Assembly: GCF_032444005.1 (NCBI RefSeq)
Contig: NC_091289.1
Span: forward strand, 4,402,001-4,466,000
Source of the DNA: Ranitomeya imitator
Lineage: Eukaryota
Direction of reading: 5' to 3'
Length of the DNA stretch: 64,000 nucleotides
Shown here piece after piece: positions 10,601-64,000 of the stretch (position 1 is its first letter; each line of letters begins with the position of its first letter). The position numbers and the translations under genes were made by a program. Under the pieces are notes generated by a model, which was not told where the DNA came from, made no database searches, and saw only the letters and a program-made list of their open reading frames with translations.

Positions 10601-11770
10601 ACGGGTCATGCCGGCTTTCCTCGCGGTCTCATTCCCGCAGTGACAGTCGGACGCTCCCACATCTCTTGCCATTCACAGACCCGAGCGGCCACGTTTACAA
10701 AGCTGGAACACGACACCGGTGGGTTTGGACCGGAGGCCGACACTTCCGTGGCGTCAGATGGGACATGGCAGAGAGATCGCTCTGCAAAAAAACTCTGCGT
10801 TTAACCCCCAAAATCCGGGACTTTTTCTTTATTAAATTTTTGCCCGATACATTTTCTGAATCATTTCAGTTTTATAATAATCCAGAGCGTCTTTTTGGTG
10901 CGACCAGAAGAACGTTAGAAAGTTTTCCTGCATTTTTGTGTAAACTGGAGAGATTGTTTTCTAATTCTGGATTCTGCGCACGGTCACGTTCCCTGCTCAG
11001 AGGGTTCCTCGTACCAGACTCGGCCCCGGGACACAGGTCACTCAGCTTTCTGAGAGCCTGGAATGGAGCAGTGAAAATATCACTACAATATGATGAACTG
11101 CCGTTCAGGAGTCTGGGAAAGCTGAGTGACAGCCCCGCAGGACCTGGATAGAACGGCCGTGCTTTAGCCATCTAACATCGGACAAGAGAAGCGGGGAGCA
11201 TCAGGTGCGGGGAGTTGGGTGATGATTTTGCGGTTCCTACAAGTTGTCGCTTTCTCTCCCCTTCCAGGTTGGTATTGGGGGCCGATTACCGCCACAGAGG
11301 CCAAACAGAGACTCCAGAAAATGCCGGAGGGCGTCTTCCTGGTGCGGGACAGCACGCACCCCAGTTACCTCTTCACTTTATCGGTCCGGACGAACCGCGG
11401 CCCCACGAACGTTCGCATCGAGTACTCGGACAGCCTCTTCCGGCTGGACTCTAACTGGCTGTCTAAGCCGCGGATCCTCTCCTTCCCCGACGTCGTCAGC
11501 CTGGTGCAATATTACGTCTCGTCCTGCAACTCCGACAGCTCCAAGGACCCCGCCAGCCGGTCGCCCCCCGCACCCACCTCCCCTAAAGAGCCCCCGGCAG
11601 TGCACCTCAAGCTCCTGCAGCCGCTGCATCGAAGCGCGGACAGCCCGAGCCTCCAGCACCTGTGCCGGCTACAGATCAGCCGCAGCGTGGCGCCGGGCTC
11701 CGACCTCACAGCGCTGCCGCTGCCGCGGAGGATGGTGGACTACCTGCAGCGGTACCCATTCACGCTCTGA
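7679..11770 (+). CDS. CISH: Cytokine-inducible SH2-containing protein; join(7679..7698,7866..8116,11268..11770), 257 aa
   Basis: Exon 1 is MILCVR with AG|GTAAGA donor. Exon 2 ends [20 protein letters not shown]. Exon 3 has the SH2 domain ([52 protein letters not shown]) and a SOCS box ([10 protein letters not shown]...[18 protein letters not shown]). All junctions are GT-AG; 20+251+503=774 nt, in frame. Confidence 0.97.
8474..10637. repeat. CpG-rich minisatellite, 34-35-bp unit, CISH intron 2
   Basis: GTCACGTCGGCTTTCCTCGCGGTCTCATTCCCGG repeated; source of the long spurious ORFs at 8503-11151. Confidence 0.93.
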
Positions 11771-19471: not shown

Positions 19472-19944
19472 TCTATAGATACAATGTATCAACCCAAAAA
19501 CAGGATTTAACTCCTGACCTGCCGGGCTTGTGATCTGGACTTTTGTATGGAGCCCTACAGAGAAGCACCCGAAAAACTCCACAGCACAAGGAGCTCTCCC
19601 TATTGGCCCCTTGCTGATGGATGAGGGTCCAACAGCTGAGACCCTCAATGATCCCCACTGTGGGGTTCCGCAGTGCCCCCTCCAGTCAGTGCTCATGGGA
19701 TAGCGATCTGCGCGCACACGTGTGAGGACCAGGACCCTAATCCTCAGGATTGGGGGCCGAACCCTATAGTCAGACTCATTATAGCTGTATGTTCCCGTAA
19801 ACGGCAGTCTGTCCTCTCCACCTGCTGTGAAGATGAGTGCAGGCTATTGCTCCCTGTTATCAGCCAGGTGAACCAGGCTCAGATCATTCTCAGAATATGA
19901 GCAATTCTATCACCACAGGGGCGGCCCCCCGGCCCTCCTAACGT

Positions 19945-26512: not shown

Positions 26513-29500
26513 TCAGTGCTCGGAGCTTTGTCTCCTCCGTAGATGGATGAAGCGAGGTCTGAGGAAAAAGATGAACAGAAGTCAGACATTGGGGCCGGAC
26601 AGGAGAGGAACAATGAGATGTATGAGTGAGGACAGACGTTGTATGCTACAGAGATGGGCACTGCACAGTGCTGCCCTCGCCCGCAGAGCTCACCCTGCCC
26701 CTCGCCCGCAGGGCTCACCCTACCCCTCGCCCGCAGAGCTCACCCTGCCCCTCGCCCGCAGGGCTCACCCTACCCCTCGCCCGCAGAGCTCACCCTTCCC
26801 CTCGCCCGCAGAGCTCACCCTGCCCCTCGCCCGCAGGGCTCACCCTGCCCCTCGCCGTAGAGCTCACCCTGCCCCTCGCCCGCAGAGCTCACCCTGCCCC
26901 TCGCCGTAGAGCTCACCCTTCCCCTCGCCGTAGAGCTCACCCTGCCCCTCGCCCGCAGAGCTCACCCTGCCCCTCGCCCGCAGAGCTCACCCTGCCCCTC
27001 GCCCGCAGAGCTCACCCTTCCCCTCGCCGTAGAGCTCACCCTGCCCCTCGCCCGCAGAGCTCACCCTGCCCCTCGCCCGCAGGGCTCACCCTTCCCCTCG
27101 CCGTAGAGCTCACCCTGCCCCTCGCCCGCAGAGCTCACCCTGCCCCTCGCCGTAGAGCTCACCCTTCCCCTCGCCGTAGAGCTCACCCTGCCCCTCGCCC
27201 GCAGAGCTCACCCTACCCCTCGCCCGCAGAGCTCACCCTTCCCCTCGCCGTAGAGCTCACCCTGCCCCTCGCCCGCAGGGCTCACCCTGCCCCTCGCCCG
27301 CAGGGCTCACCCTGCCCCTCGCCCGCAGAGCTCACCCTGCCCCTCGCCCGCAGGGCTCACCCTGCCCCTCGCCCGCAGGGCTCACCCTGCCCCTCGCCCG
27401 CAGGGCTCACCCTGCCCCTCGCCCGCAGAGCTCACCCTTCCCCTCGCCCACAGAGCTCACCCTGCCCCCCCCTGTAGAGCTCACCTTGCCCCTCGCCCGC
27501 AGAGCTCACCTTGCCCCTCGCCCGCAGGGCTCACCCTGCCGCTCACCCTGCCCCGCCCGCAGAGCTCACCCTGCCCCTCGCCCGCAGGGCTCACCCTGCC
27601 CCTCGCCCGCAGGGCTCACCCTGCCCCTCGCCCGCAGGGCTCACCCTGCCCCTCGCCCGCAGGGCTCACCCTGCCCCTCGCCCGCAGAGCTCACCCTGCC
27701 CCTCTCCCGCAGAGCTCACCCTGCCCCCCCACCTGTAGAGCTCACCTTGCCCCTCGCCCGCAGGGCTCACCCTGCCGCTCACCCTGCCCCGCCCGCAGAG
27801 CTCACCCTGCCCCTCGCCCGCAGGGCTCACCCTGCCCCTCGCCCGCAGAGCTAACCCTGCCCCCCGCCCGCAGAGCTCACCTTGCCCCTCGCCCGCAGAG
27901 CTCACCTTGCCCCTCGCCCGCAGAGCTCACCCTGCCCCTCGCCCGCAGAGCTCACCCTGCCCCTCGCCCGCAGAGCTCACCCTGCCCCTCGCCCGCAGAG
28001 CTCACCCTGCCCCTCGCCCGCAGGGCTCACCCTGCCCCCCCCCCCCACCTGTAGAGCTCACCTTGCCCCTCGCCCGCAGAGCTCACCCTGCCCCCCTCCC
28101 CACCTGTAGAGCTCACCTTGCCCCTCGCCCGCAGGGCTCACCCTGCCCCTCGCCCACAGAGCTAACCCTGCCCCCCGCCTGCAGAGCTCACCTTGCCCCT
28201 CGCCCGCAGAGCTCACCCTGCCCCTCGCCCGCAGAGCTCACCCTGCCCCTCGCCCGTAGATCTCACCCTGCCCCTCGCCCGCAGATCTCACCCTGCCGCT
28301 CACCCTGCCCCCTGCCCCTATCCCTGTAGGTTATCATTACGGGCAGCCTGGTGACAGGTGGCCCCCCGTCTTTTGTGCACCTTATTTTGGGGGGGTAATA
28401 ATCAGAGTTACAAAGCTGTAAGTGATTGATACACTGCGAGTTATTGGCAAACATGGCACAATATGGAGCAGGTACACAGTGAACGGTCTGCCACACACAT
28501 GAATATCTTACTTACTTGCCGCAGAAATCCTTCACTATATTCAGGAGCTGTAGTCGCCCCTCTGGGTGGTCTTCCAGCCATTTTTGCACCATCTCAGGAT
28601 GCCGAGGATCCCCCTCCAGATAAACATCACTGGAAATTGAAGGAACAGCAGACATTGGAGACCCTGAACATCCAAGCCCCCCCCCCCCCCCATCAACTGC
28701 AGAAGTCGCGATAAGGTCACGTACCCCCCGTCCTTTAGCATGAGCGGTGCAAGACGTAGGATCCCCTTCATCACATCCATGCCATCGAGACCCCCATGTA
28801 ATGCTGAGTGGTCTTCATATCTAGGAACATGGCACAGGCTGGAAGAGCTCAGGCTAATAATAGGGGGATACAGACAGGAGACCCTTGGCCCTCAGACTAA
28901 TAATAGGGGGATACAGACAGGAGACCCTCGGCCCCATACAGCACCCACCTGAGGATCTCCGGCTCCAGCTGACTCATGTCCTCTGTACATATATAGGGCG
29001 GATTACTGACCACCGCAGACACGGCCCCCAGATCCAGAAGTCGCTCTATGGGATCTGCGTTGTGAGGAAGGAGGTCAGTAACGCACCAGATACAATGTCT
29101 GTGACACTACAACTCTCAGCATGCTGGGAGGGCGCACACTGCAAATCACTGACTCATAAAATCGCAATTCTACAATGACATCCACGATGGGAGTTATCCC
29201 CCAAGAAAGTGTCTCCCAGGCCCCCAATAGGAAGAAAGTACTGTGCCGATCAGCAGAGGAAACACTGCGCTGCCGAGCGTCCACATCTCACCGGTCAAAA
29301 CGTCGTGCTGCAGAAGGTGAAGTCTGTGCTGCAGGCCGAGCCTGGAGGAAGGAGCAACAGAGTCAGGAGCTGCGCGGAGCTCGTATCTGCGCTCCTAGTT
29401 CAGGGACCTACCTCACGGCGTTATCCCGGGTCAGACTCACAGCGGCCTTGGATTTATCTATGGCGATGACGCGCACCTAAGAGACATGGAGAGGCAGAGG

Positions 29501-32500
29501 GTAAATACGGGGAGCGCAGGGTACGGCCGGGGAGGGAGGGGTACGGCCGGGGTACAGCTGGGGAGCGCAGGGTACGTCCGGGGAGCGCGGGGTACGTCCG
29601 GGGAGCGCGGGGTACGTCCGGAAAGCGCGGGGGTGCGTCCGGAGAGCGCGGGGTGCGTCCGGAGAGCGCGGGGTGCGTCCGGAGAGCGCGGGGTGCGTCC
29701 GGAGAGCGCGGGGTGCGTCCGGAGAGCGCGGGGTGCGTCCGGAGAGCGCGGGGTGCGTCCGGAGAGCGCGGGGTGCGTCCGAGTAGGGCGGGGGAACATC
29801 CAGGGATGGCGGGGAACGCCTGGAGTGGGCGAGGTACGCACGGGGTACGTCCGGGGAGCGCGGGGTACGTCCGGGGAGCGCGGGGTACGTCCGGGGAGCG
29901 CGGGGAACATCCGGGGACGGCAGGGAACGCCCGGAGGGGGCGGGGTACGCCCAGGGAGAGTGGGGTACGTCCGGAGAGCGCAGAGTCAACTCATCACGAT
30001 GCATCACAGGAAACAGCGGTAGGAGGGACAGAGAGTGTGGGCGTGATGGCGGAGGTCCCTTTACCTGAGGGATCCTCCGGAGTAACGCCAAGGACACAGC
30101 TCCTGATCCACAGCCAACCTCTAGTATGGAGTCCTCGGCAGAACGGTGCAGCTCCTCGCAGTCGGCCACCACCAGCCCCACGAGCTCCTGCATCAGAGAC
30201 ACAACATCACTACAACGGCCATACTGCACGGGTGACCACAAGTCTCCTCCCTCTTGTTATTGAGGCTCGTCCCTCTAGGAGCGGTACACCTCTGAACGGA
30301 GCAGAGCTGCAGTGTAAAGCATGAAAGGGAGGAGCAGGAGACGGAGCTGTGGAGGTGATAAAATGGAGCAGACGAGGCAGCTAAGAAGCCCTGACCCTCT
30401 CCTACCTCCGTCTCCGGCCGCGGGATCAGCACTGGGGGTCTCATTTCTAGCGTCATGTCCAGGAAGTCCCATTCTCCAATTATATATTGGACGGGAACCC
30501 TGGAGGTGAGAAAAACATGAAGGACGAGTCCAGGCTCTGCCCAAAAGAAGGCTGCAGAGCGAGGGGGACAGGAGGCCGAGAACGGTGCGAGCCCTAAAGC
30601 CACTGCCTGTGTGGCAGAACAGCACCGGTGTGAGGAGCGAGCACTGCACATATACTCAGCAGTGTGTACTGTATATAGAGTGAATCGACGCGCTCCGCTC
30701 CACACACTGTATATACGAGGAGACGTCACGCTCCGCTACACACACTGTATATACGAGGAGACGTCACGCTCCGCTACACACACTGTATATACGAGGAGAC
30801 GTCGCGCTCCGCTCCACACACTGTATATACGAGGAGACGACGCGCTCCGCTCCACACACTGTATATACGAGGAGACGTCACGCTCCGCTCCACACACTGT
30901 ATATACGAGGAGACGTCACGCTCCACACACTGTATATACGAGGAGACGACGCGCTCCGCTCCACACACTGTATATACGAGGAGACGTCACGCTCCGCTAC
31001 ACACACTGTATATACGAGGAGACGTCGCGCTCCGCTCCACACACTGTATATACGAGGAGACGTCACGCTCCGCTCCACACACTGTATATACGAGGAGACG
31101 TCACGCTCCACACACTGTATATACGAGGAGACGACGCGCTCCGCTCCACACACTGTATATACGAGGAGACGTCACGCTCCGCTACACACACTGTATATAC
31201 GAGGAGACGTCGCGCTCCGCTCCACATACTGTATATATACGAGGAGACGTCGCGCTCCGCTCCACACACTGTATATACGAGGAGACGACGCGCTCCGCTC
31301 CACACACTGTATATACGAGGAGACGTCACGCTCCGCTACACACACTGTATATACGAGGAGACGTCGCGCTCCGCTACACACACTGTATATACGAGGAGAC
31401 GTCGCGCTCCGCTCCACACACTGTATATACGAGGAGACGTCACGCTCCACACACTGTATATACGAGGAGACGACGCGCTCCGCTCCACACACTGTATATA
31501 CGAGGAGACGTCACGCTCCACACACTGTATATACGAGGAGACGACGCGCTCCGCTCCACACACTGTATATACGAGGAGACGTCACGCTCCGCTCCACACA
31601 CTGTATATACAAGGAGACGTCACGCTCCACACACTGTATATACGAGGAGACGTCACGCTCCGCTCCACACACTGTATATACGAGGAGACGTCATGCTCCA
31701 CACACTGTATATACGAGGAGACGTCACGCTCCGCTCCACTCACTTTATATACGAGGAGAAGTCATGCTCCACACACTGTATATACGAGGAGACGTCATGC
31801 TCCACACACTGTATATACGAGACGTCACGCTCCGCTCCACACACTGTATATACGAGGAGACGACGCGCTCCGCTCCACACACTGTATATACGAGGAGACG
31901 ACACGCTCCGCTCCACACACTGTATATACGAGGAGACGTCGCGCTCCGCTCCACACACTGTATATACGAGGAGACGTCACGCTCCGCTCCATACACTGTA
32001 TATACGAGGAGACGTCACGCTCCGCTCCACACACTGTATATACGAGGAGACGTCACGCTCCGCTCCACACACTGTATATACGAGGATATGACGCGCTCCG
32101 CTCCACACACTGTATATACGAGGAGACGACGCACTCCGCTCCACACACTGTATATACGAGGAGACGTCATGCTCCACACACTGTATATACGAGGAGACGT
32201 CACGCTCCGCTCCACACACTGTATATATGAGGAGACGTCACGCTCCGCTCCACACACTGTATATACGAGGAGATGTCACGCTCCGCTCCACACACTGTAT
32301 ATACGAGGAGACATCGCGCTCCGCTCCACAGACTGTATATACGAGGAGACATCGCGCTCCGCTCCACACACTGTATATACGAGGAGACGTCACGCTCCGC
32401 TCCACACACTGTATATACGAGGAGACGTCACGCTCCACACACTGTATATACGAGGAGACGAAGCGCTCCGCTCCACACACTGTATATACGAGAGTTGCGC

Positions 32501-33912
32501 TCCACACACTGTATATACGAGGAGACGTCACGCTCCGCTCCACACACTGTATATGCGAGGAGAGAGTCACGCTCCACACACTGTATATACGTGGAGACGT
32601 CACGCTCCGCTCCACACACTGTATATACACTGGGTTCATTGTTCCGGGAAGCTGTGATTCATCTGTTACTTAACCACTATAATAAAGGATCGAGGCCAGG
32701 AGGAATCCTACAATCGTCAGTGACGCTGCACATACAAGTCACCTTTACATAACCCTAATCTGCACTGCAGCTCTTCCCTTGTGCTTCAGCCACATCCAGA
32801 GCTGCAGACACTGAACCAGCAGGGACATGTGACGTCCTGGAACCAACAGATGAGGAACCAGCAGAACCATGAATGCAGCTCTGCATGTGACTTGTGATCA
32901 GGACAAGATGAATGAAGTTAAGGATTTTAATACTGAGATTCACAAGTGATGAGACGCGTGAGATCAGTAACGTGCGGCGGAGCGCACTCACCTCTTCAGA
33001 CGTTGTTGTGCCATTTTCTCTACAAGCAGCAGCTGATCGGCAGACACTGGAGAACGCGCTGCGCAGGATCCGATACTGTGCATCTGCCAGACAGAAAAAG
33101 GGATCTGTGAGGACGTGAGCACCCCCCCAACCGGAGCACCCCCACTACCGTAGCACCCCCACCACCGGAGCAACCCCACCACCAGAGCACTCCCACCACC
33201 GGAGCACCCCCACCCGTTGCAGCACCCCACCACCGGGGCACCCTCCCAACTTGAGCACCCCCACCACCGCAGCACTCCCCCGCTGGAGTAACCCCACCAC
33301 CAGAGCAACCCCACCACCAGAGCACTCCCACTCCCCCCCACTGGAGCACCCCCACCACCACTGGAGCACCCCGACTACCAGTGCACCCCCACCACCAACA
33401 GAGCACAGAAGAGAAACCACAGGAACCTGTATTGCAAAAGCAGTGAAACAACAGATATGATCATGGAGCAGCTGCCAGATGCCTATGTCCCCTCCAAACT
33501 TAACCCATCTATCCTCACCTCCTTTTCCAGACCCCCCACTCCATTCCTCCAGACCCCCCCCCCCCACACTCCATTCCTCCAGACCCCCCCCCCCCCCACT
33601 CCATTCCTCCAGACCCCCCTCCCCCACACTCCATTCCTCCCCCCCCCCACTCCATTCCTCCAGACCCCAGTTCAGTCCCTTCCTCCAGACCCTCTTCTGC
33701 CCTCAGGATCTTGCACTCACCGTCTTTGCTCCCAGTGCATGAGCGATTAGTATTTGGCTGGAGTCCTCGGGCTCAGGGATCCCATGTTGATGGAAGACTT
33801 TCTCCCAGTATGATGCCAGTTTACCCGCTGTCATTCCTGTTGCCCCCATCCTACGGCACGGCACTGGTATATGGGCAACTTTGGCAAGAAACTGGCGCAG
33901 TAAAGGTTGCAT
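26513..33912 (-). CDS. HEMK1: HemK/PrmC-family mitochondrial release factor glutamine methyltransferase; complement(join(26513..26558,28516..28629,28725..28820,28949..29054,29292..29341,29412..29476,30065..30187,30406..30499,32992..33083,33721..33912)), 325 aa
   Basis: Ten exons with GT-AG ends sum to 978 nt in frame. Motifs: [41 protein letters not shown]...[14 protein letters not shown]-binding LEVGCGSG, catalytic [28 protein letters not shown]...[12 protein letters not shown]. The Arg/Leu-rich N-terminus is compatible with a mitochondrial presequence. Confidence 0.95.
26670..28320. repeat. GC-rich minisatellite, 25-bp unit, HEMK1 last intron
   Basis: GCCCCTCGCCCGCAGAGCTCACCCT repeated. 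Confidence 0.92.
29500..29990. repeat. GC-rich minisatellite, 20-bp unit, HEMK1 intron
   Basis: GTCCGGAGAGCGCGGGGTGC repeated. Confidence 0.88.
30690..32628. repeat. Minisatellite, 33-38-bp unit, HEMK1 intron
   Basis: CACACACTGTATATACGAGGAGACGTCACGCTCCGCTC repeated. Confidence 0.92.
33118..33665. repeat. C-rich short tandem arrays, HEMK1 intron
   Basis: CCACCACCGGAGCACCCC-like units at 33118-33400 and CACTCCATTCCTCCAGACCCCC units at 33530-33665. Confidence 0.75.
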
Positions 33913-34699
33913 GACCTGCAGGACAAAGAAAAACTCTGTGGAGTTCCCACAATACATAGATGGTACTATAATGGCCAGATCGCAGCCCGATGCTCGGCCA
34001 CTGCTGCTCGGCCGCCGCTGCCAACCACTCACACCTAATGCCCTCAGTGCCTTCTCTTCTGCCTGCCCCATGGGACTATGCATCACTCGCTGTACATCCG
34101 GATTCATGAACAGAATGTCAGCACTACACACAGAAGAGCGGCAGCAATCAGGAGGCTGGATCTGTGTCAGTGCATGTGCCGTTCAGGACATGTGGAAAGC
34201 TGGGTGACCACGAGCGCCATCATGGGGCTCATGGTGGCGATGGCACGCTCAGGTGTTTTTTTATTATGATGCAGAGAACATCAGAGGAATTACGATCCGC
34301 GGACACGGCGCGTCTACATCAGCTCCAGGAATTCAGGGCGGCGGCCGATCCTCCTCGGATCACTGGAAACCGGCACCAGGACTGCCCAAAAAAGTGCCCG
34401 AGTCAGAGTGCAGGCGTCAGCCGGACATGTGCTCGGCAGTAATGGCGTCATATGGCGGTATAATGTGAGGGCGGTATCATAGGACAAGGCCCGGCCGACT
34501 AATGACCTGACGGCGGCGTAGGTATCCACAGAGCTGACGGTGACTGGCCCCGCGGCAGGCGGCACTTGCACCAGCGCTGTGTTTTGGCTCCTGGGCGCTG
34601 CGTGGCATTACCTCCCTGTATGGGGCAGAATTATGTAGGCACACAGGGCAGGCGCCAAGATGGCAGTAATCCGGCACAGCTGAGGCCACCGATAGGCTG

Positions 34700-36022
34700 C
34701 CAGGGGGTGCTTCGGACTGTAGGGGGGGGGGTGCTTCCGACTGTAGGGGGGGGGGGGGTGCTCCAGACTGATGGGGGGGGAAGGTGCTCCGGACTGATGG
34801 GGGGGGGGGGGGGGGAAGGTGCTACTGACTGTTTTCGGGGGGTGCGCCGGACTGTTGGGGGGGGGTGCTCCGGACTGTAGGGGGGGTGTGCTCCGGACTG
34901 TTGGGGGGGGGGGGGTGCTCCAGACTGATGGGGGGGGAAGGTGCTCCGGACTGATGGGGGGGGGGGAAGGTGCTCCGGACTGATGGGGGGGAAGGTGCTA
35001 CTGACTGTTTTCGGGGGTGCTCCGGACTGTTGGGGGGGGGTGCTCCAGACTGTTGGGGGGGGTGCTCCAGACTGTTGGGGGGGGGCTCCAGACTGTTGGG
35101 GGGGGGGGGGGCTCCAGACTGTTGGGGGAGGGGGAGAGGGGCGCCGGACTGTTGGGGGGGGGTGCTCCAGACTGTTGGGTGAGGGGCGCCGGACTGCTGG
35201 GGGGTGCCCCCGGACTGTTGGGGGGGTGCTCTAGACTGTTGGGGGGGGGGCTCCGGACTGTTGGGGGGGGGTGCTCCAGACTGTTGGGTGAGGGGCGTTG
35301 GACTGTTGGGGGGGGGGGTGCCCCGTTGGGGGGGGGGTGCTCCAGACTGTTGGGGGGGGGGGTGCTCCAGACTGTTGGGGGGGGTGCTCCAGACTGTTGG
35401 GTGAGGGGCGGTGGACTGTTGGGGGGGGGGGTGCCCCGTTGGGGGGGGGTGCCCCGGACTGCTGGGGGGGCTGGGGGGGGGCTCCGGACTGTTGGGGGGG
35501 GGGGTGCTCCGGACTGTTGGGGGGGGGGTGCTCCAGACTGTTGGGGGGGGGTGCTCCAGACTGTTGGGGGGGGGGGTGCTCCAGACTGTTGGGGGGGGGG
35601 GTGCTCCAGACTGTTGGGGGGGGGTGCTCCAGACTGTTGGGGGGGGGTGCTCCGGACTGTTGGGGGTGGGGGGGGGGTGCTCCAGACTGTTGGGGGGGGT
35701 GCTCCGGACTATTGGGGGTGGGGGGGTGCTGCGGACTGTCGGGGGGGTGCTCCGGACTGTTGGGGGGTGGGGGCTCCGGACAGTTGGGGGGTGCTCCAGG
35801 ACAGTTGGGGGGTGCTCCGGACTGTTGGGGGGGTCATCGAGACTGTTGGGGGGGTGCTCCGGACTATTGGGGGGGGGGTGCTGCGGACTGTTGGGGGGTG
35901 CTCCGGACTGTTGGGGGGGTGATCGAGACTGTTGGGGGGGGGGGTGCTGCGGACTGTTGGGGGGGTGCTCCGGACTATTGGGGGGGGGGGGTGCTGCGGA
36001 CTGTTGGGGGGGTGCTCCGGAC
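34700..36022. repeat. G-rich minisatellite, ~22-24-bp unit with long G tracts
   Basis: GGTGCTCC(A/G)GACTGTTGGGGGG(G)n repeated. Confidence 0.9.
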
Positions 36023-36659
36023 TCGTCGGTTGCTTTCTTTTTTACAGGTGTAATAAGAGGAACGGATGACCATGACAACACACTGCACAGCGGCTGGAGG
36101 GGAAGCACCTGAACGCTGCCCGCGCCGCCATATTGTGCCATTTTCTGCCGCTGTCGTCGCCTCAGGCCGCTCCACATATTTTGTACATTTCTGCTTAATA
36201 AACTTGCAAAAAGAAAAAAAGTTAAAGTGAAAAAGAAAGTAAGAACTGACTTTAGTCTCGTCTCTGAATCACTGAGGTGGAACTACCAGTCGCAGCATGT
36301 CCAGAGGGCGAGGCGAGACATGCTTGGCCTTGTGGTGTCACATGAAGCCTATGGCAGTGTAGAGCAGTCACCTGCCTCCGGGGCTGAGCGATAACGGCAC
36401 CGGGAACTAATCCTACCTGGCAGCTGAGGGGTTAACGGAGCACTGTGACATGAACGGACATACCACTTCCGGAATCTCCAGAAAACGAAGCACCAGAACA
36501 TTAGTTCCTAAAGGTTCCGTTTCTTTCCTGCGCATGACCATTGTTGTCCTTTTCTGTTTTCGTCTTCATCCCCGTAGACATTTTGGAAATGCCATCGCGG
36601 TAACTATGGCAGCATTTGTGGTCCTTACTCCTTCCCAGTATGGGTATGCCTGCGCCCGT

Positions 36660-36980
36660 AGTAAAGATGGCGGCGCTCTATCACTTAGCTTTTGTTCCTT
36701 TCCGTATACAATCAGCGCATGCGTAGTGAGACAACAAAAATTCCCTTTACCTTACATAGGGAGTGACAGGACTATTAACCAATCGGAGGCGGGTAGTGTC
36801 TAACATTGGGCGGGGCTAAGCAGTCTGTCACAGGAGGAATTGGCTCGTGAGGAGACTCCAGATAGAAGGAGGGGACCCGGACCGGGCCCGAGAGGGGCGC
36901 CACAGCGGCCGAGCAGCCCCCGGAGCCACAGGTGAGCGCTCACCCCACACAGGGCTGCGGAACTACAAGTCCCAGCACGG
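36660..36980. promoter_or_regulatory. Bidirectional HEMK1/C3orf18 promoter (CpG-rich)
   Basis: YY1-type AAGATGGCGGCG 36664-36675; NRF1-like GCGCATGCGT 36715-36724; CCAAT 36779-36783 and ATTGG 36805-36809; GC box GGGCGGGGC 36808-36816; ZNF143/THAP11-type ACTACAAGTCCCAGCA 36962-36977. Candidate non-coding first-exon donors: CAG|GTGAGC at 36931 (+) and AAG|GTAAAG at 36751 (-). Confidence 0.75.
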
Positions 36981-37084
36981 AGTACAGTGTGCTCACTCCT
37001 TATAGTGCAGGCGGATGGGCCACAGCGCGAGAGCTCTGCCACACGGACCCCCCTCCTGCGACATCTACTTATCGTTGTGCGGGC

Positions 37085-37670
37085 TGCACTCACCTCCAGA
37101 GCTGCACTCCAGTCACCTCCAGAGCTGGACTCCATCGTGTGTCTGTACTCCAGTCACCTCCAGAGCTGCACTCCATCGTGTGTCTGTACTCCAGTCACCT
37201 CCAGAGCTGCGCTCCATCGTGTGTCTGTACTCCAGTCACCTCCAGAGCTGCGCTCCATCGTGTGTCTGTACTCCAGTCACCTCCAGAGCTGCGCTCCATC
37301 GTGTGTCTGTACTCCAGTCACCTCCAGAGCTGCGCTCCATCGTGTGTCTGTACTCCAGTCACCTCCAGAGCTGCGCTCCATCGTGTGTCTGTACTCCAGT
37401 CACCTCCAGAGCTGCACTCCATCGTGTGTCTGTACTCCAGTCACCTCCAGAGCTGCACTCCATCGTGTGTCTGTACTCCAGTCACCTCCAGAGCTGCGCT
37501 CCATCGTGTGTCTGTACTCCAGTCACCTCCAGAGCTGCGCTCCTTATATTGTGTGTTTGTACTCCAGTCACCTCCAGAGCTGCACTCCTTCTTATATAGT
37601 GTGTTTATACGCCAGTCACCTCCAGAGCTGCACTCCTTCTTATATAGTGTGTTTATACTTTAGTCACCTC
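37085..37670. repeat. Minisatellite, 41-bp unit, C3orf18 intron 1
   Basis: CAGTCACCTCCAGAGCTGCACTCCATCGTGTGTCTGTACTC repeated. Confidence 0.9.
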
Positions 37671-38520
37671 TGGGAGGTGTGCGGGAGTAGGAGGAGGCAC
37701 AGGGGGATGTGTGGGAGGAGGGAGGCACAGGGAGATGTGCGGGAGTAGGAGGAGGCACGGGGATGTGTGGGAAGAGGGAGGCACAGGGGGATGTGCGGGA
37801 GGAGGAGGCACGGGGGATGGACGAGAGGAGGAGGCACAGGGGATGGACGAGAGGAGGAGGCACGGGGGATGGACGGGAGGAGGAGGCACGGGGATGGACG
37901 GGAGGAGGAGCACGGGGGGATGGACGGGAGAAGGAGGCACGGGGGATGGACGGAAGGAGGAGGCACAAGGGGGATGTGCGGGAGGAGGAGGCACGGGGGA
38001 TGGACGAGAGGAGGAGGCACGGGGGATGGACGGGAGGAGGAGCACGGGGGGATGGACGGGAGAAGGAGGCACGGGGGATGGACGGAAGGAGGAGGCACGG
38101 GGGGATGGACGGGAGAAGGAGGCACGGGGGATGGATGGGAGGAGGAGGCACAAGGGGGATGGACGGGAGGAGGAGGCACGGGGGATGGACGGGAGGAGGA
38201 GGCACGGGGGATGGACGGGAGAAGGAGGCACGGGGGATGGACGGAAGGAGGAGGCACGGGGGGATGGACGGGAGAAGGAGGCACGGGGGATGGATGGGAG
38301 GAGGAGGCACAAGGGGGATGGACGGGAGGAGGAGGCACGGGGGGATGGACGGGAGGAGGAGGCACAAGGGGGATGGACGGGAGAAGGAGGCACGGGGGGA
38401 TGGACGGGAGGAGGAGGCACAATGGGGATGCACGGGAGGAGGAGGCACAAGGGGGATGTGCGTGAGGAGGGAGGCACGGGGGGGGGGGGGGAGGATGGAC
38501 GGGAGGAGGAGGGTTGGGGG
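37670..38520. repeat. Purine-rich minisatellite, ~27-30-bp unit
   Basis: GGGGGATGGACGGGAGGAGGAGGCAC repeated. Confidence 0.88.
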
Positions 38521-38571
38521 GGGTGTGACACCATTCTATTGTAGTGATTTTCTGGCGTTTAACCCCTAGTG

Positions 38572-38757
38572 CAGAGGTGTCAACCTGCATTCCTCAAGGG
38601 CTGCAAACAGGTCATGTTTTCAGGATTTCCTTGTACTGCACAGGTGATAATTTAATCACCTACACACATAATGATTGCAGCACCTTGTGCAAAGCTAAGG
38701 AAATCTGGAAAACACGCATGGTTTGCGGCCCTCGAGGAATGCAGTTTGACCCCCCTG
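38572..38757. mobile_element. hAT-type MITE
   Basis: Imperfect ~37-bp TIRs (CAGAGGTGTCAACCTGCATTCCTCAAGGGCTGCAAAC / GTTTGCGGCCCTCGAGGAATGCAGTTTGACCCCCCTG) and a perfect 8-bp TSD CCCTAGTG (38564-38571, 38758-38765). Confidence 0.88.
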
Positions 38758-39495
38758 CCCTAGTGTCCTGTGTCCTCGGCTGCGAGTGGCTCTTACATTA
38801 GTGACCATTGCCCGACCTAAGAGCTGTTCTGCCAGTGTATTTGATCTGTTCCTCACAAGTGCAGCCCCCCCCCCCCCCCCCCCACCGCTGTTTTTACGCT
38901 CACGGTTATGTATTTTCTCTTGAACTTTTTGTCCAGAACAGTCACTATATATTTTTTCAGATATAAAAATCGTTTCCCACTAAATAATTTGATCAATTTT
39001 CCCTTTTTTCTGCTTTCACATCGGTCCTGCATTGGTGGTAAACACGTTGTTAATGCTCGTTTGGTTCAGCAAAAATCCAGCTAAACCTGCTTTTTTCCTG
39101 CAGCCTTTTTACTGCCAAGAGATCAGGTTTTGGCTGCTGAAAAGAAGGAGCAAAAAAAGCAACGTGTGAACAAAGCCTTATTGTTCAGTCCCCTGTACAG
39201 CTGCAGTCCACATTTTGCTGGTTCCTGTCGGCTCTGCTCGCTGCTCCCAGCTGCTGGCTCGGTGCATTGGGCGGATCTGATGCATTTGTAGTGTCTGTTG
39301 GTACAGTGCAGCGACAGAATAATGAATGCAGCTCTGGATGTGACTGCAGCCACGATGTAGCTCAGGATCAGTCGCAGGTAAAGCACAGTGGACATACTCT
39401 ATTTAAGTGTAATAACCTACTCTGTATTTTCTCCTGCAGGTTTCCTGTGGACTGTGTGACTATGCTTCCTGACCCACGGTGACGACCAAACTACC

Positions 39496-50467
<10,972 letters not shown>

Positions 50468-56479: not shown

Positions 56480-58028
56480 CACTGCTCAAAAAAATAAAGG
56501 GAACACTACAATCCCACATCCTAGATATCGCTGGATGAAATATTCCAGTTGTAAATCTTTATTCATTACATAGTGGAATGTGTTGAGAATAATAAAACCT
56601 AAAAATGATCAATGTAAATCACAACTAATATCTCACGGAGGTCTGGATTTGGAATGATGCTCAAAATCAAAGTGGAAAATGAAGTTACAGGCTGATACAA
56701 CTTCAGTGGAAATGTCTCAAGACAAGGGAATGATGCTCAGTAGTGTGTGTGGCCTCCACGTACCTGTATGACCTCCCTACAATGCTTGGGCATGCTCCTG
56801 ATGAGGCGGCGGATGGTCTCCGGAGGGATCTCCTCCCAGACCTGGACTAAAGCATCCGCCAACTCCTGGACAGTCTGTGGTGCAATGTGACATTGGTGGA
56901 TGGTGCGAGACATGATGTCCCAGATGTGGTCAATCGGATTCAGGTCTGGGGAACGGGCGGCCAGTCCATAGCTTCAATGCCTTCATCTTGCAGGAACTGC
57001 TGACACTCCAGCCACATGAGGTCTGGCATTGTCCTGCATTAGGAGGAGCCCAGGGCCACCGCACCACATGTGGTCTCACAAGGGGTCTGAGGATCTCATC
57101 TCTGTACCTAATGGCGGTCAGGCTATCTCTGGCGAGCACATGGAGGGCTAAGCGGCCCTCTAAAGAAATGCCACCCCACACCATTACTGACCCACTGCCA
57201 AACCGGTCATGCTGAAGGATGTTGCAGGCAGCAGATCGCTCTCCACGGCGTCTCCAGACTCTGTCACATGTGCTCAGTGTGAACCTGCTCTCATCTGTGA
57301 AGAGCACAGGGTGCCAGTGGCAAATTTGCCAATCCTGGTGTTCTGTGGCAAATGCCAAGCATCCTGCATGGTGTTGGGCTGTGAGCACAACCCCCATCTG
57401 TGGACGTCGGGCCCTCAGACCATCCTCATGGAGTCGGTTTCTAACCGTTTGTGCAGACACATGCACATTTGTGGCCTGCTGGAGGTCATTTTGCTGGACT
57501 CTGGCAGTGCTCCTCCTTGCACATAGGCTGAGGTAACAGTCCTGCAGCTGGGTTGTTGCCCTCCTACGGCTTCCTCCACGTCTTCTGGTGTACTGGCCTG
57601 TCTCCTGGTAGCGCCTCCAGCCTCTGGACACTACGCTGACAGACACAGCAAACCTTCTTGCCACAGCTCGCATTGATGTGCCATCCTGGATGAGCTGCAC
57701 TACCTGAGCCACTTGTGTGGGTTAGAGTCCGTCTCATGCTACCACGAGTGTGAAAGCACAACCAACATTCAAAAGTGACCAAAACATCAGCCATAAAGCA
57801 TTGGTACTGAGATGTGGTCTGTGGTCCCCACCTGCAGAACCGATCCTTTATTGAGGGGGTCTTGATAATTGCCAATAATTTCCATCTGTTGTCTATTCCA
57901 TTTGCACAACAGCATGTGACATTGTCAATCAGTGTTGTTCCTAAGTGGACAGTTTGATTTCACAGACGTTTGATTTACTTGGAGTTAGATTTTGTTGTTT
58001 AAGTGTTCCCTTTATTTTTTGTGCAGTG
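56480..58028 (-). mobile_element. Tc1/mariner DNA transposon, degenerate transposase
   Basis: TIRs CACTGCTCAAAAAAATAAAGGGAACACT / AGTGTTCCCTTTATTTTTTGTGCAGTG with TA TSD. Minus strand has the HTH region ([15 protein letters not shown]), FTDESRF, VMVWGGI and NARPH; the 3' part is frameshifted. Confidence 0.93.
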
Positions 58029-58814
58029 TATAAATGTCCCCATTCACTGACAGCTCATGAGTCCCAGAGACGGAAGCAGCGCCGCTAGTCAGTCCGGGGA
58101 ACAGAGGGAGGGGGCAGGTTTGGTGTCCAGTTCTTCCATCTTGTACTTTTTCTGGGGGTCCATTAGACTCTGCCCCAGCAGGATGCAGACAAGAATCAGA
58201 ACCCCGACACTGAAGGCATCTGTCAGTCACTCTGCCCTGCTGTGTGCAGACGAGGGGCCACGTGTGCCAGGGCTCATAGGGGCACTACAGGGGTCGCAGC
58301 TTATTTGCATCTCTCCTGCTGCGAATTCTCAATTCCCCTGACACCAGCCACCCCTTCCCTTCACAAGCCTGGTTGTGCTGGGACTTGTCCTACTACTTCC
58401 CTGACATGACAGACCAGCCCTAGATCTGATGTGGAATGTGACCTTTCATCTCGGAAGGGAGGGGTTGTAGTCCTGACAAGGCAGACGCTGAGCTGCCAGG
58501 AGAAGCTGCCAACACTTAGGAAGAAGAGACGCATACCCCCCCAGAGGAGCAGGGCTACCAAATGGCAAGTATGTCCATGCGGAGCGAGGAGTGTGCAGTA
58601 TGAGGAGCGCGGAGGGGGCAGCACACGGATGGCGGAGGGGACAGTGATGTGCTGCAGGTTCTTTCACTTCCTCGTCAGTCGCCATATTACCAGGTCAGAC
58701 TACAGGAGCCGTGACTGCGTGATCTGCCGCCAGTCATCACTGCTAGAAGTCAGCATGAGATGTTTCCAATTACATAAGAACTTCTGCTCCTTATTTACTG
58801 AAGCCGCTAAACCG

Positions 58815-59610
58815 TTCCTCTTCTTTTTGTTGTGTCTGCACGGCGCCGCTCTTCCGTTCCTCATCTTTCTGTCATGTCTGCACGGCGCCGCTCTTCCGTT
58901 CCTCTTCTTCCGTTCCTATTCTTCCGTTCCTATCTGCACTGTGCCGCTCTTCCGTTCCTCTTCTTTCTGTCGTATCTGCACTGTGCTGCTCTTCTGTTCC
59001 TCATCTTTCTGTCGTGTCTGCACGGCGCCGCTCTTTCGTTCCTCATCTTTCTGTCATGTCTGCACGGCGCCACTCTTCCGTTCCCCATCTTTGTCATGTC
59101 TGCATGGTGCCGCTCTTCGGTTCCTCATTTTTCTGTCGTGTCTGCATGGCGCCGCTGGTCCATTCCACTTCTTTCGGCCTTATCTGCACGGCGCCGCTCT
59201 TCTGTTCCTCTTCGTTCTGTCGTGTCTGCGTGGTGCCGCTGTTCTGTTCCTCTAATTTCGGTTGTGTCTGCGTGGCGCCGCTGTTCCATTCCTCTTCTTT
59301 CTGTCGTGTCTGCATGGTGCCGCTCTTCCGTTCCGCATCTTTCGGTAGTTTTTGCACGGCTTGCTGTTCCGTTCCTCTTCTTTCGGTCGTGTCTGCACGG
59401 CTTGCTGTTCCGTTCCTCTTCTTTCGGTTGTGTCTGCACGGTGCCGCTATTCCATTCCTCTTTCTGTCGTGTCTGCATGGCGCCGCTGTTCCATTCCTCT
59501 TTCGGTTGTGTCTGCACGGCGCCGCTCTTCCGTTCCGCATCTTTCGGTAGCTTTTGCACGGCGCCGCTCCTCCGGTCCTTTTCTTTGGGTCGTGTCTGCA
59601 CAGCACCGGC
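58815..59610. repeat. Diverged minisatellite, ~38-40-bp unit
   Basis: TTCCGTTCCTCTTCTTTCTGTCGTGTCTGCACGGCGCCGCTC-like units. Confidence 0.85.
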
Positions 59611-60453: not shown

Positions 60454-61158
60454 TATTAGCGAACGCACTTCCATTTTGGTAACCAGCTACGATGTGGCCC
60501 TCCCTAACGCTCTCCGTGTTTATAGTTGTGCGGCGTTCGTCCCAGTTACGGGCCGGGCTGTGTCTCCTGGTCACTATATCAACCTGAGACTCTGTGTCAC
60601 ATCAACGTTGGATTGTGAATTTATTTTTCACGATTTCTGTGCAGAATTCCTCAGCGTGAGGATAAGATTTGTAAAATGTCGTCTGTGCCCACCGCAGAAT
60701 CCACCCGCGCATATCCACATCGCGAGCCTTCGAGCAGTTCTGTCCGGTGTGGATTTCCTCTAAGGCTTTGTTCACACATTTTCTCCAGTTTTTATCTTCC
60801 GTTGTGAATTATCGTACATTACAAGCTCCACATGCTGAGGAAAGTTTCCACACAGAAATCCGAAAGTGCTGCAGATTGTCAGATCGCGGCTCGTCGTGTT
60901 GTGCGCGTGCCGCAGAATGATCAGTGCAGGTTTCACCATCTGTTTATAGGGGGCACATGGGTGGTCTGCTGGGAGTCGCTGTGGATATGGCTCCAATATT
61001 ACAGGTCTGTGGCTAATAAGCCCTTTCTCTTCTTTTTGCTTACAGTCGAGGCTCGGTACGTTGTGAAGATTTCCTCTGATGTTGACGTCCATTGTGCATT
61101 TTGGGGACTCCTCAAATCCTAATTAACACCGTGGTGACCCCTCGTTCTGCGGATCACC

Positions 61159-62280
61159 ATGCTGGAGCCGTATCCCAGCTCTGACATAGATGAGCCGCAC
61201 ACATTACGTTCTGATCTGCCGATCAATGGGATTGTGCTGCCGGAGTCACCAGATCCGAGTCCTCCATCTTGTGCATCTTATTCATTGCAGATCAGTGATT
61301 CACACAGTGCAGAACTCGTAACGGGGGCACACAAGAGCCAATGCGAGGCGAACTGTGGCCTCAAAAGAGACCCTTCACCCTGCGGCTCCAGCCCTTCAGA
61401 TGCGTGTGAGCTTTCATGTGCTGCCAATCCGACAGCAGCGGCATCAAAGACGTTCAGTGAGACGAAGAGCGCAACAGAGGAGCTGGAACATGAACGCAAA
61501 GCACGAGCAGAAGACATCAGAGACTTCCTCCGCCCTGCTGCATTAGGCCATACCCGGGGCAGCCATGGTGGCACAGTGTCTCCAGGACCTCCAGCTGGCT
61601 TCTCGGTGTCTGATTTACCCCCCTCGGTGTCTGATTTACCCCCCTCGGTGTCTGATTTATCCTCTTTCCCTCCATATTTGCTGCCGTCTTCCGTGAAGTT
61701 TTTCAGCTTTGTGATACTCCACGTCCCGGAGGATGAGGAGGAAGCTCAGAGGGTCTGCGCAGTTCTGCACCATCTGCAGATCGTGAACGGCACAACGTTT
61801 TGTGAAGGTTTTGAGACCGCAGGACAAAGTCCTCTCCGATGCCTTGAAGACGCCGTGGAGAACTCTGCCTACGTCGTTCTTCTACTCACTGACAATTTTG
61901 TGTCCAGATGGGGCGAGTTCCAGACCAACGTTGTCCTTATGAACTCAATCCAAGACCAAAAGAAGGGCGGCACGGTCATTCCTCTTATTCCCAGGTTCAA
62001 CCCTGCAAAAAGGACCATGCCCCTGCCTCTGAGAGCATTAACGCGCCTGGAGGAGAAGTCTGCGCTCTTCAAGACCAAAGTTCAGATAACATTCAAAGAA
62101 GACGAGATCAAAATGCAACGAGAAGAATGGGAAAGAGAACAGGCAAAACGATGGTCCGAAAAACAGCTGGAAGATGCAACGCGGCTGTCACGTGCTCTGG
62201 CGGAGATACGGCGTAACGAGGAGCAGCTGCGCACCGTCAACTCTCGTCTTTGTCAACAGTTATCGCTACACCCGACCTAA
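61159..62280 (+). CDS. TICAM (TRIF/TRAM)-family TIR-domain adaptor, single coding exon, 373 aa
   Basis: Uninterrupted ORF with Kozak CACCATG, an in-frame upstream stop at 61120-61122 and a splice acceptor at 61045/61046. The TIR domain (~aa181-312) FSFVILHVPEDEEEAQRV...GTTFCEGFETAG...LEDAVENSAYVVLLLTDNF...LMNSI...VIP aligns by eye to human TICAM1 FYNFVILHARADEHIALRV...GATFCEDFQVPG...LQDAIDHSAFIILLLTSNF and to TICAM2. Orthology is uncertain, so no symbol is given. Confidence 0.9.
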   Translation: MLEPYPSSDIDEPHTLRSDLPINGIVLPESPDPSPPSCASYSLQISDSHSAELVTGAHKSQCEANCGLKRDPSPCGSSPSDACELSCAANPTAAASKTFSETKSATEELEHERKARAEDIRDFLRPAALGHTRGSHGGTVSPGPPAGFSVSDLPPSVSDLPPSVSDLSSFPPYLLPSSVKFFSFVILHVPEDEEEAQRVCAVLHHLQIVNGTTFCEGFETAGQSPLRCLEDAVENSAYVVLLLTDNFVSRWGEFQTNVVLMNSIQDQKKGGTVIPLIPRFNPAKRTMPLPLRALTRLEEKSALFKTKVQITFKEDEIKMQREEWEREQAKRWSEKQLEDATRLSRALAEIRRNEEQLRTVNSRLCQQLSLHPT

Positions 62281-62369
62281 TATTACCAGGACAACGATCC
62301 ATCGATGAGATCCACGCTGCGAGAAATATACAGATAGGAAACCAAAATTGTATGAATGTGCAGCACCCA

Positions 62370-63745
62370 GCATAGGTGCCCCTGAAAGAGACAGAGGATA
62401 CTTGTGCCCCCGAAAGAAGAGACAGGATAGCTGTGCCCCCTTGCGAAGAGACATGATAGGTGTGCCTCCAAAAGAAGAAGCAGAGGATAGCTGTGCCCCC
62501 CCCGAGAGAAGAGACAGGATAGCTGTGCCCCCCGAGAGAAGAGACAGAGGATAGCTGTGCCCCCCGAGAGAAGAGACAGGATAGCTGTGCCCCCCGAGAG
62601 AAGACAGAGGATAGCTGTGCCCCCCGAGAGAAGAGACAGAGGATAGCTGTGCCCCCCGAGAGAAGAGACAGGATAGCTGTGCCCCCCGAGAGAAGAGAGA
62701 GAGGATAGCTGTGCCCCCCGAGAGAAGAGAGAGAGGATAGCTGTGCCCCCCGAGAGAAGAGAGAGAGGATAGCTGTGCCCCCCGAGAGAAGAGAGAGAGG
62801 ATAGCTGTGCCCCCCGAGAGAAGAGAGAGAGGATAGCTGTGCCCCCCGAGAGAAGAGAGGATAGCTGTGCCCCCGAGAGAAGAGAGAGAGGATAGCTGTG
62901 CCCTCCAAGAAAAGAGAGAGAGGATAGCTGTGCCCTCCGAGAAAGACAGAGGGTAGCTGTGCCCCTGAGAGAAGAGGCAGAGGATTGCTGTACCACCAAG
63001 AGAAGATGCAGAGGATAGCTGTACCCCCAATCCTCCCCCCCCCCCCCCCGAGAGAAGAGGCAGAGGATAGCTGTGGCCCCTAAGAGAAGAGGCTGAGGAT
63101 AGCTGTGTGTTTCCCCCCCCACCCCCACCCCGAGACAAGGGGCAGAGGATTGCTGTGCTCCCCGAGAGAAGAGGCAGAGGATTGCTGTACCCCCAAGAGA
63201 AGATGCAGAGGATAGCTGTACCCCCCCTCCTCCCCCCCCCCCCCCCCGAGAGAAGAGGCAGAGGATAGCTGTGCCCCCCAAAAGAAGAAATAGAGGATAG
63301 CTGTGCCCCACGAGAGACAAGGCAGCGGATAGCTTTGCCCCCAAGAGAAGAGGCAGAGGATAGCTGTCGCCCCGAGAAAAAAGACAGAGGATAGCTGAGC
63401 CCCCGAGAGAAGAGGCAGAGGATAGCTGTGCCCCCTAGCGAAGAGACATGATGGGTGTGCCTGCAAGAGAAAAAGCAGAGGATAGCTATGCCCCCTGAGA
63501 GAAGAGACAGGATAGCTGTGCCCTCCGAGAAAAGAGGCAGAGGGTAGCTGTGCCCCAGAGAGAAGAGGCAGAGGATAGCTGTGCCCTCAACCCCCCACCC
63601 CCCGAGAGAAGAGACAGGATAGCTGTGTTCCCTAGCGAAGAGACATGATAGGTGTACCTCCAAAAGAAGAAGCAGAGAATAGCTATGCCCCCCAAGAAAA
63701 GAGACAGAGGGTAGCTGTGCCCCAGAGAGAAGAGGCGGAGGATAG

Positions 63746-63776
<31 letters not shown>

Positions 63777-64000
63777 GAGAGAAGAGACAGGATAGCAGTG
63801 GCCCCCGAGCGAAGAGGCAGAGGATAGCTGTGGCCCCCGAGAGAAGAGACAGAGGATAGCTGTGCCCCCCCAAGAGAAGAGACAGGATAGCTGTGGCTCC
63901 CGAGGGAAGAGGCAGAGGATAGCTGTGGCTCCCGAGAGGAGAGGCAGAGGATAGCTGTGCCCCCCCAAGAGAAGAGACAGGATAGCTGTGGCCCCCAAGA
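62370..64000. repeat. Purine-rich minisatellite, ~30-32-bp unit, 3' of the TICAM-like gene
   Basis: GAGAAGAGACAG(A)GGATAGCTGTGCCCCCC repeated to the window end. Confidence 0.9.

Follow-up and report, generated by a model that had tools for sequence, protein, structure and literature searches.

A 64-kb stretch of the Ranitomeya imitator genome (64,000 nucleotides of contig NC_091289.1, positions 4,402,001 to 4,466,000 of the forward strand; hereafter, the window) contains an intact open reading frame (ORF) encoding a 373-amino-acid protein of the TICAM1 (TRIF) type. Our sequence comparisons identify this ORF as a second TICAM1 copy, confined to dendrobatoid frogs, rather than as the canonical TICAM1 of the frog. 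On balance, and with modest confidence, we favour the explanation that this dendrobatoid copy, which lies on another chromosome and whose RHIM has been frameshifted, provides an interferon-biased output beside canonical TICAM1.

A second TICAM1 copy in dendrobatoid frogs

The translation of the ORF ran from start to stop without a break, in line with a preliminary description of this DNA that had reported an intact ORF of 373 amino acids (aa).

61159..62280, + strand: dendrobatoid-specific TICAM1 (TRIF) paralog ORF, stop included, 373 aa, uninterrupted translation

The closest protein was XP_077133149.1 of Ranitomeya variabilis, also of 373 aa, which showed 88.7% identity to the window protein with 42 substitutions and no indel, followed by uncharacterized proteins of Phyllobates terribilis (463 aa, 62%) and Anomaloglossus baeobatrachus (405 aa, 58%). 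Identity between the window protein and canonical frog TICAM1 was 45-50%. Separate proteins annotated as TICAM1 or TICAM1-like were present in R. imitator, R. variabilis, Phyllobates, Dendrobates tinctorius and Anomaloglossus, and therefore these frogs possess two TICAM1-type genes. The second gene is not labelled as such in current annotation: the R. variabilis ortholog is filed as a 'C3orf18' isoform, the Phyllobates and Anomaloglossus proteins are uncharacterized, and none of them is annotated as a TICAM.

A maximum-likelihood tree of 41 sequences (LG+C20) grouped the window protein with its R. variabilis, Phyllobates and Anomaloglossus counterparts in a paralog clade with 100/100 support and a long stem (0.49). 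Branching within this clade followed the species tree, with the aromobatid diverging first, then Phyllobates and then Ranitomeya, and the whole clade was nested inside hyloid TICAM1 (100/98). A sister relation of the paralog clade to the dendrobatoid canonical clade was not rejected by the approximately unbiased test (p = 0.256), and no second TICAM1 copy was found in any other hyloid family sampled. These data are best explained by a duplication that occurred at the base of Dendrobatoidea or earlier.

pLxIS block, TIR domain and αE helix

The following elements were recognized along the protein, from the N-terminus to the C-terminus.

61189..61218, + strand: conserved DEPHTLRSDL block (aa 11-20); P13, L16 and S18 do not vary among the TICAM1 proteins of frogs, caecilian, salamander and echidna
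61282..61308, + strand: pLxIS motif region SLQISDSHS (aa 42-50); Ser46, Ser48 and Ser50 are candidate phospho-acceptors
61602..61659, + strand: perfect 21-bp tandem repeat, 2.8 copies, 100% matches, encoding SVSDLPP repeats in a disordered linker just before the TIR
61699..62094, + strand: TRIF-type TIR domain (aa 181-312), recognized by Pfam TIR_2, phmmer, AlphaFold2 and Foldseek
62098..62268, + strand: long αE helix by which the TIR is extended (aa 314-370), a single helix with predicted local distance difference test (pLDDT) values >94 in the AlphaFold2 model

The sequence SLQIS, located at aa 42-46 (nt 61282-61296) as previously described, was the sole LxIS of the ORF, and alignments of anuran TICAM1-like proteins showed no variation at L43, I45 and S46 and almost none at S48. 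A profile whose only input was the first 50-67 residues of frog proteins was searched against 177,635 PDB sequences. It returned exactly three matches, all of them human TRIF at its pLxIS segment, the best being 5jel_B, the phospho-TRIF peptide of the IRF3 complex (E 4.3e-4), and the other two being residues 189-219 and 192-222 of full-length TRIF (E about 0.01). Because the frog-only profile matched human TRIF alone, and precisely at the pLxIS segment, the window block is evidently homologous to that segment (Ser210 of human TRIF) and not a chance motif. The similarity between aa 16-48 and the human segment, first noticed by eye in the preliminary description, is thus borne out beyond chance.

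The DEPHTLRSDL block is situated ∼25 residues upstream of the pLxIS motif. It bears a loose likeness to the TBK1-binding motif of STING, PLPLR(T/S)D, and the proline of the block is apparently missing from human TRIF. A literature search, in whose scope the original STING paper did not fall, gave no support for PHTLRSD as a STING-like TBK1-binding motif. As for the SVSDLPP tract, canonical TICAM1 has none, and the homologous tract of the Phyllobates and Anomaloglossus paralogs is of much greater length.

Several approaches agreed on the TIR domain, whose previously proposed limits, about aa 181-312, were upheld. Pfam TIR_2 matched aa 185-285 with a score just over the gathering score (E 1.5e-6), and a phmmer search against all PDB sequences aligned aa 153-338 with residues 368-557 of human TRIF (E 3.6e-30), with TRAM following at E 2e-22. 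An AlphaFold2 model calculated from a 52-sequence alignment (an earlier run with 23 sequences was poor, with a mean pLDDT of 45) predicted aa 1-178 to be disordered and aa 181-312 to fold confidently into a TIR, with pLDDT mostly >90. The top PDB match of this model in Foldseek was the human TRIF oligomer 8rlm (E 4e-11, target-normalised TM-score 0.82), after which came TRAM and TRIF TIR structures. What had been described as a helical tail was indeed modelled as a helix (aa 314-370), although it is nothing special to this protein: the human TRIF TIR ends in an unusually long αE helix of 65 aa, seen in the map obtained by electron cryo-microscopy (PMC12965317), and the window tail corresponds to this standard TRIF helix, since the phmmer alignment runs through the αE region up to TRIF residue 557.

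The proline of the BB loop (P434 in human TRIF) is replaced by Ala at aa 221 (61819-61821). Canonical TICAM1 carried the same Ala in all aligned hyloid frogs and Pro in ranoids and early-branching frogs, which marks the substitution as a hyloid trait and not a trait of the paralog.

Compared with human TRIF/TICAM1 (712 aa; PDB 8rlm, 9dk8, 2m1x and the 5jel peptide), the window product is thus alike in its pLxIS segment, in the sequence and fold of the TIR and in the αE helix, and differs from it in having no IFIT-like N-terminal domain (NTD; aa 1-153 of TRIF), TRAF6/TRAF2 sites, proline-rich regions or RHIM. TRAM/TICAM2, the second-best match in sequence and in fold, is also a small adaptor of the TICAM family with one TIR and neither NTD nor RHIM. 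In contrast to TRAM, which has an N-terminal myristoylation signal and a bridging-adaptor role, the window protein starts with MLEPYPS, without Gly2, carries the pLxIS block and falls phylogenetically within TICAM1, to which all its close homologs belong.

A frameshift in front of the RHIM

No RHIM core tetrad occurred in the ORF, as expected from the preliminary description, in which no RHIM had been seen in the product. What had gone unremarked there is that a complete RHIM-like tail is encoded immediately after the stop codon, out of frame.

62271..62280, + strand: frameshift site and premature stop; C-run 62271-62273 at codon 372, TAA at 62278-62280
62277..62375, + strand: out-of-frame RHIM relic LILPGQRSIDEIHAARNIQIGNQNCMNVQHPA with its own stop; contains IQIGNQN, core tetrad IQIG at 62328-62339

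Whereas the frame of the ORF ends in …L-H-P-T-stop, the adjacent frame reads P-D-L-I-L-P-G-Q, to be compared with P-N-L-I-L-P-G-Q in the Phyllobates paralog. The two frames part at the C-run 62271-62273, which is consistent with the loss of one base. The relic was identical to the in-frame tail of the Phyllobates paralog at 25 of 32 residues, and tblastn searches placed on it the tails of the Phyllobates paralog (E 1.5e-18) and of Bufo canonical TICAM1 (E 4e-8), as well as aa 381-415 of R. imitator canonical TICAM1 (E 2e-4). The C-terminus of canonical frog TICAM1, VIQI…NVQIGNQNSMNVQ, comprises the RHIM core and gave sub-threshold PF12721 matches of 12-15 bits. In the Phyllobates paralog, unlike in the window, LILPGQGSTIEIHDSRNIQIGNQNSMNMQHPA is retained in frame and the RHIM is complete.

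The R. variabilis ortholog, a protein of equal length and 89% identity, has the same C-terminus as the window protein (…SLHPT), and therefore the frameshift is a lesion shared by both species and not an assembly error. The Anomaloglossus paralog stops even earlier, within the αE helix. Considered together with the Ranitomeya frameshift, this earlier end indicates at least two losses of the RHIM within the paralog clade. The absence of the RHIM from the window product is the outcome of a recent frameshift in the Ranitomeya lineage, and not an anciently designed minimal architecture.

Two routes by which the RHIM frame might be reached were discarded: programmed frameshifting, as no slippery heptamer precedes the stop, and a mini-intron, as the sequence has no plausible donor/acceptor pair. 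A cluster of transcripts encoding 373 aa, considered as a parallel case, turned out to represent an N-terminally incomplete canonical TICAM1 of another hyloid in which the RHIM is present.

The NTD and TRAF6 sites are missing across frogs

Neither the ORF nor any frog short form had a Pfam match to the TRIF-NTD (PF17798), while echidna and arowana controls were strongly positive. An NTD relic upstream of the ORF was ruled out by tblastn of the 64-kb window with seven NTD sequences (best E 0.11). Canonical TICAM1 measured 396-478 aa in all ∼20 neobatrachian species sampled and in Bombina, Spea and Pelobates, and those short forms with a complete N-terminus started within about a dozen residues of the D-x-P-H-T-L-R-S block. 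Where the NTD exists, it lies directly 5′ of this same block, as seen in caecilians, salamanders, lungfish, Ascaphus, Xenopus and Pelodytes. The NTD was absent from all sampled Neobatrachia, Bombina, Spea and Pelobates; Ascaphus, Xenopus and Pelodytes had a shortened version, caecilians and salamanders the full-length domain, and it was present in lungfish too. This distribution would imply several independent losses or gene models that omit an exon. TRIF surveys, PMC9440496 among them, contained no mention that we found of NTD loss in frog TRIF; according to PMC9440496, the pLxIS motif and the RHIM are both retained in amphibian TRIF.

As for TRAF6, the whole ORF was free of any PxE, as had been stated, and the strict motif PxExx(aromatic/acidic) was found in none of the canonical anuran TICAM1 proteins tested, the R. 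variabilis paralog, with one PTEELE, supplying the only anuran match. The picture of a minimal adaptor without NTD, TRAF6 motif and RHIM therefore holds as a portrait of the product, although the first two absences are shared with canonical frog TICAM1. Since all neobatrachian TICAM1 proteins tested lack the NTD, this absence is not a defining one within frogs, and the RHIM is the sole special absence of the window gene. The further suggestion that such an architecture was undescribed for a vertebrate TICAM is largely refuted, because TICAM1 proteins of 420-450 aa that are already annotated in anurans (Bufo, Hyla, Rana, Ranitomeya and others) are NTD-less, without strict TRAF6 motifs and pLxIS-first.

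Canonical neobatrachian TICAM1 (R. imitator XP_069623890.1, 426 aa; Bufo bufo XP_040273664.1, 449 aa) accordingly resembles the window paralog in its single coding exon, its Met-proximal DEPHTLRSDL…LQIS block, the lack of a TRIF-NTD and of a strict TRAF6 motif, the TRIF-type TIR with the BB-loop Ala in hyloids, and the long αE helix. It differs from the paralog in that it keeps a C-terminal RHIM (VIQI…NVQIGNQN) and acidic tail, has no SVSDLPP linker, resides on another chromosome and evolves at about half the rate. Teleost TICAM1 is another naturally occurring TRIF in which Pfam detects no RHIM (PMC9440496; arowana sequence), unlike the window product in that the NTD is kept (arowana, PF17798 E 1.9e-35) and in that only a few teleosts have the pLxIS motif (PMC9440496).

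Coding exon and genomic neighbourhood

Two features mark the presumed beginning of the coding exon.

61023..61045, + strand: predicted 3′ splice acceptor (polypyrimidine tract and CAG), 18/20 pyrimidines before AG 61044-61045
61046..61158, + strand: likely 5′ untranslated region (UTR) part of the coding exon, containing the in-frame TAA 61120-61122

The in-frame stop upstream of the ATG and the lack of any AG between them, both pointed out in the preliminary description, were verified (TAA 61120-61122, followed by 36 AG-free bases), so that splicing upstream of the ATG cannot have added an N-terminal extension. Among the acceptor-like sites around the ORF the strongest is the pyrimidine-rich one ending at 61045, and the coding exon therefore probably begins at 61046, with a short 5′-UTR. 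In the three species that were looked up (R. variabilis, Phyllobates and Anomaloglossus), the gene ranges of the orthologs corresponded to a single-exon coding sequence. The R. variabilis ortholog has three modelled transcripts at NCBI (XP_077133149.1,.150 and.152), all giving the same 373-aa protein. Despite being a TICAM1 paralog, this ortholog bears the name 'uncharacterized protein C3orf18 homolog isoform X1' there. Its transcripts were probably merged into the locus of the neighbouring gene, and the merged gene model hints at a promoter or 5′ exons shared with that neighbour.

Two markers served to characterize the locus.

11219..11770, + strand: CISH/SOCS-like last exon (SH2 and SOCS box); Pfam SH2 E 3.5e-11, SOCS_box E 1.3e-9
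29477..34131, − strand: HEMK1-like exons, a weakly supported marker; ORFs with EVGCGSGA and …QYIIGEWDF…VLIPRPETE

The HEMK1-like ORFs had no Pfam match and a weak PDB match to HemK structures (E 0.04). Two + strand ORFs that were candidates for C3orf18 exons (39460-39693 and 43313-43642) had no Pfam match, and the candidate at 39490-39693 gave chance-level database matches only. CISH, HEMK1 and C3orf18 are neighbours at human 3p21.31, and human TICAM1 is located at 19p13.3; the arrangement of CISH-like and HEMK1-like genes in the window resembles human 3p21.31. In each species, paralogs were located on contigs of 206-399 Mb and canonical copies on contigs of ∼1.0-1.25 Gb. The paralog thus resides on a different chromosome from canonical TICAM1, in a CISH/HEMK1-type neighbourhood.

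Long tandem and minisatellite arrays dominate the window (62389-64000, 58812-59608, ∼8500-11150 and 15993-24523, together with 26500-28330, 30611-32750 and 34822-38590). Among them are arrays of a 32-bp unit, directly past the 3′ end of the gene, and of a 42-bp unit located upstream. Many long but spurious ORFs on either strand result from these arrays. In addition, a Tc1/mariner-type transposase fragment (HTH_Tnp_Tc3_2) was identified at 56930-57712 (−), 3.4 kb upstream of the gene, and an ORF for a reverse transcriptase of the long interspersed nuclear element type at 5373-6548 (+), near the start of the window.

Discussion

The window gene is a copy derived from an already short, NTD-less TICAM1 of a hyloid frog, and three modules have been kept in it: the pLxIS block at the N-terminus, a TIR of the TRIF type and the long αE helix. 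We propose that the last two would allow the protein to join TIR assemblies of TLR3 or TICAM1, its pLxIS serines, phosphorylated by TBK1, would dock IRF3, and the absent RHIM would leave it unable to nucleate RIPK1/RIPK3 assemblies. The net effect would be an interferon-biased output added to that of full-length canonical TICAM1, which the genus retains. Docking and IRF3 recruitment with no seeding of RIPK1/RIPK3 are expected because the TBK1 branch appears separable from the RHIM-dependent RIPK1 branch in human cells. There, TBK1 phosphorylation precedes the formation of the mature TRIFosome and may not need it, RIPK1 associates with mature TRIF complexes that are proposed to be cross-linked by RHIMs, and mutation of the RHIM shortens TRIF filaments (PMC12965317, PMC13642992). 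Contacts between RHIMs lengthen and stabilise these filaments, and RIPK1 prefers mature complexes (PMC13642992). The identity and evolutionary history of the gene follow from the comparisons presented above; its signalling behaviour is what we infer from the modules that it has and lacks. An adaptor uncoupled from RIPK-dependent outputs is the most reasonable functional interpretation, and such a protein could plausibly act as an interferon-biased adaptor or as a partner that dilutes the canonical copy, the two kinds of role suggested in the preliminary description.

We weighed the proposal of an added interferon-biased output against the alternative that the gene is in decay, that is, that it became redundant after duplication, that the frameshift was the first disabling lesion and that the ORF is drifting towards a pseudogene. 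Several observations count against our proposal, and most of them would suit decay. Path lengths from the Ranitomeya-Phyllobates split were 0.264-0.27 for the paralog versus 0.137 for the canonical copy, ∼1.9-fold faster, and the 88.7% identity between the two Ranitomeya paralogs has to be compared with 96.2% between the canonical proteins of R. imitator and R. variabilis, so that the evolution to be explained is two to three times faster than that of the canonical copy. The 42 recent differences were spread evenly over TIR, linker and tail (Fisher p = 1.0). Gly209 (61783-61785), invariant in 19 canonical frog TICAM1 proteins and in the Phyllobates and Anomaloglossus paralogs, is replaced by Val in the window and by Met in R. 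variabilis, two replacements in closely related species. The C-terminus is truncated in two lineages. A search of a large database with the paralog-specific N-terminal half found no transcript-derived contig encoding the protein, a result that is uninformative rather than negative. The BB-loop proline is Ala in the paralog, though canonical hyloid TICAM1 has the same residue, and the residues that follow the pLxIS serine have changed from SQSPT to SDSHS. Against decay, the reading frame is open in four species that span the dendrobatoid radiation, and no indel or stop has arisen in 373 codons despite the 42 amino-acid differences from R. variabilis. In neutral DNA with so many substitutions several indels would be expected, as estimated from general indel-to-substitution ratios. 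Protein-level comparisons, by which constraint was judged, revealed that the differences between the window and R. variabilis proteins avoid columns conserved in canonical frogs (3/70 versus 32/238, p = 0.033), also within the TIR (2/56 versus 15/88, p = 0.016; 4/77 versus 13/67 at a looser conservation threshold, p = 0.01). The TIR was 80% identical between the window and Phyllobates proteins and the linker 64% (p = 0.004). The three transcripts modelled at NCBI for the ortholog of R. variabilis also speak against decay. Since recent substitutions avoid conserved columns and the frame is kept in four species, the window gene is probably functional, and it is best described as constrained but fast-evolving. 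We consider decay unlikely.

Alternatively, the gene could encode a negative regulator or decoy, with no signalling of its own, whose TIR and αE helix co-assemble with canonical TICAM1 or TLR3 and dilute the density of RHIMs. Such a protein would damp NF-κB activation and cell death that depend on RIPK1/RIPK3, and possibly the interferon output. The conserved and confidently folded TIR core and αE helix speak for this role, as do the stabilisation of TRIF filaments by RHIM-RHIM contacts and the preference of RIPK1 for mature complexes (PMC13642992). Moreover, the double loss of the RHIM in the paralog clade (Ranitomeya and Anomaloglossus) makes this motif look dispensable or disfavoured there, and the diverged flank of the pLxIS motif points in the same direction. 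However, a pure decoy would have no need of the L-x-I-S core and the two following serines, which have been kept in four of four paralogs over a long span, and the Phyllobates paralog still has its RHIM, for which reasons we judge the decoy improbable, to about the same degree as decay. We give very little credence to a third alternative, in which the ORF is part of a larger spliced product, for instance with an upstream coding exon of the C3orf18 type joined at 61289-61290. It would fit the filing of the R. variabilis ortholog under the gene 'C3orf18 homolog' and the acceptor-like site at 61289-61290, which lies in phase 0 inside SLQ/IS. Yet the acceptor at 61044-61045 is far stronger (90% versus 70% pyrimidines), one and the same 373-aa protein results from all three R. 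variabilis transcripts, the three ortholog ranges are single-exon, the tblastn searches detected nothing NTD-like in the window, and the conserved Met start is common to canonical frog TICAM1. Among these alternatives, a RHIM-frameshifted dendrobatoid TICAM1 copy with an interferon-biased output remains the one that we prefer.

A lineage-specific TICAM1 paralog with a derived truncation of the RHIM is real and mostly an ordinary gene-family event, and does not found a new class of architecture. Its interest lies in current models of TRIF, which distinguish an early, TIR-driven TBK1/IRF3 branch from a later RIPK1/RIPK3 branch that relies on RHIM cross-linking (PMC12965317, PMC13642992), and for which a RHIM-less, NTD-less paralog beside a RHIM-bearing canonical copy constitutes a ready comparative test of branch modularity. 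On a broader scale, TRIF signalling in most frogs apparently proceeds with no NTD, the domain to which autoinhibition of mammalian TRIF is ascribed, and this raises the question of how the frog adaptor is kept off. It is conceivable, albeit doubtful, that poison frogs maintain under selection a separation-of-function TRIF, devoid of NTD and RHIM and with pLxIS, TIR and αE intact, that acts as an interferon-only adaptor or as a brake on the TRIFosome. If this were true, these frogs would have interferon signalling without the inflammation and death driven by RIPK1/RIPK3, or a brake on the canonical TRIFosome, and the fast evolution of the gene might reflect a host-pathogen arms race rather than decay. 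The paralog would then be a natural version of the RHIM-disruption experiment wanted by current TRIFosome work.

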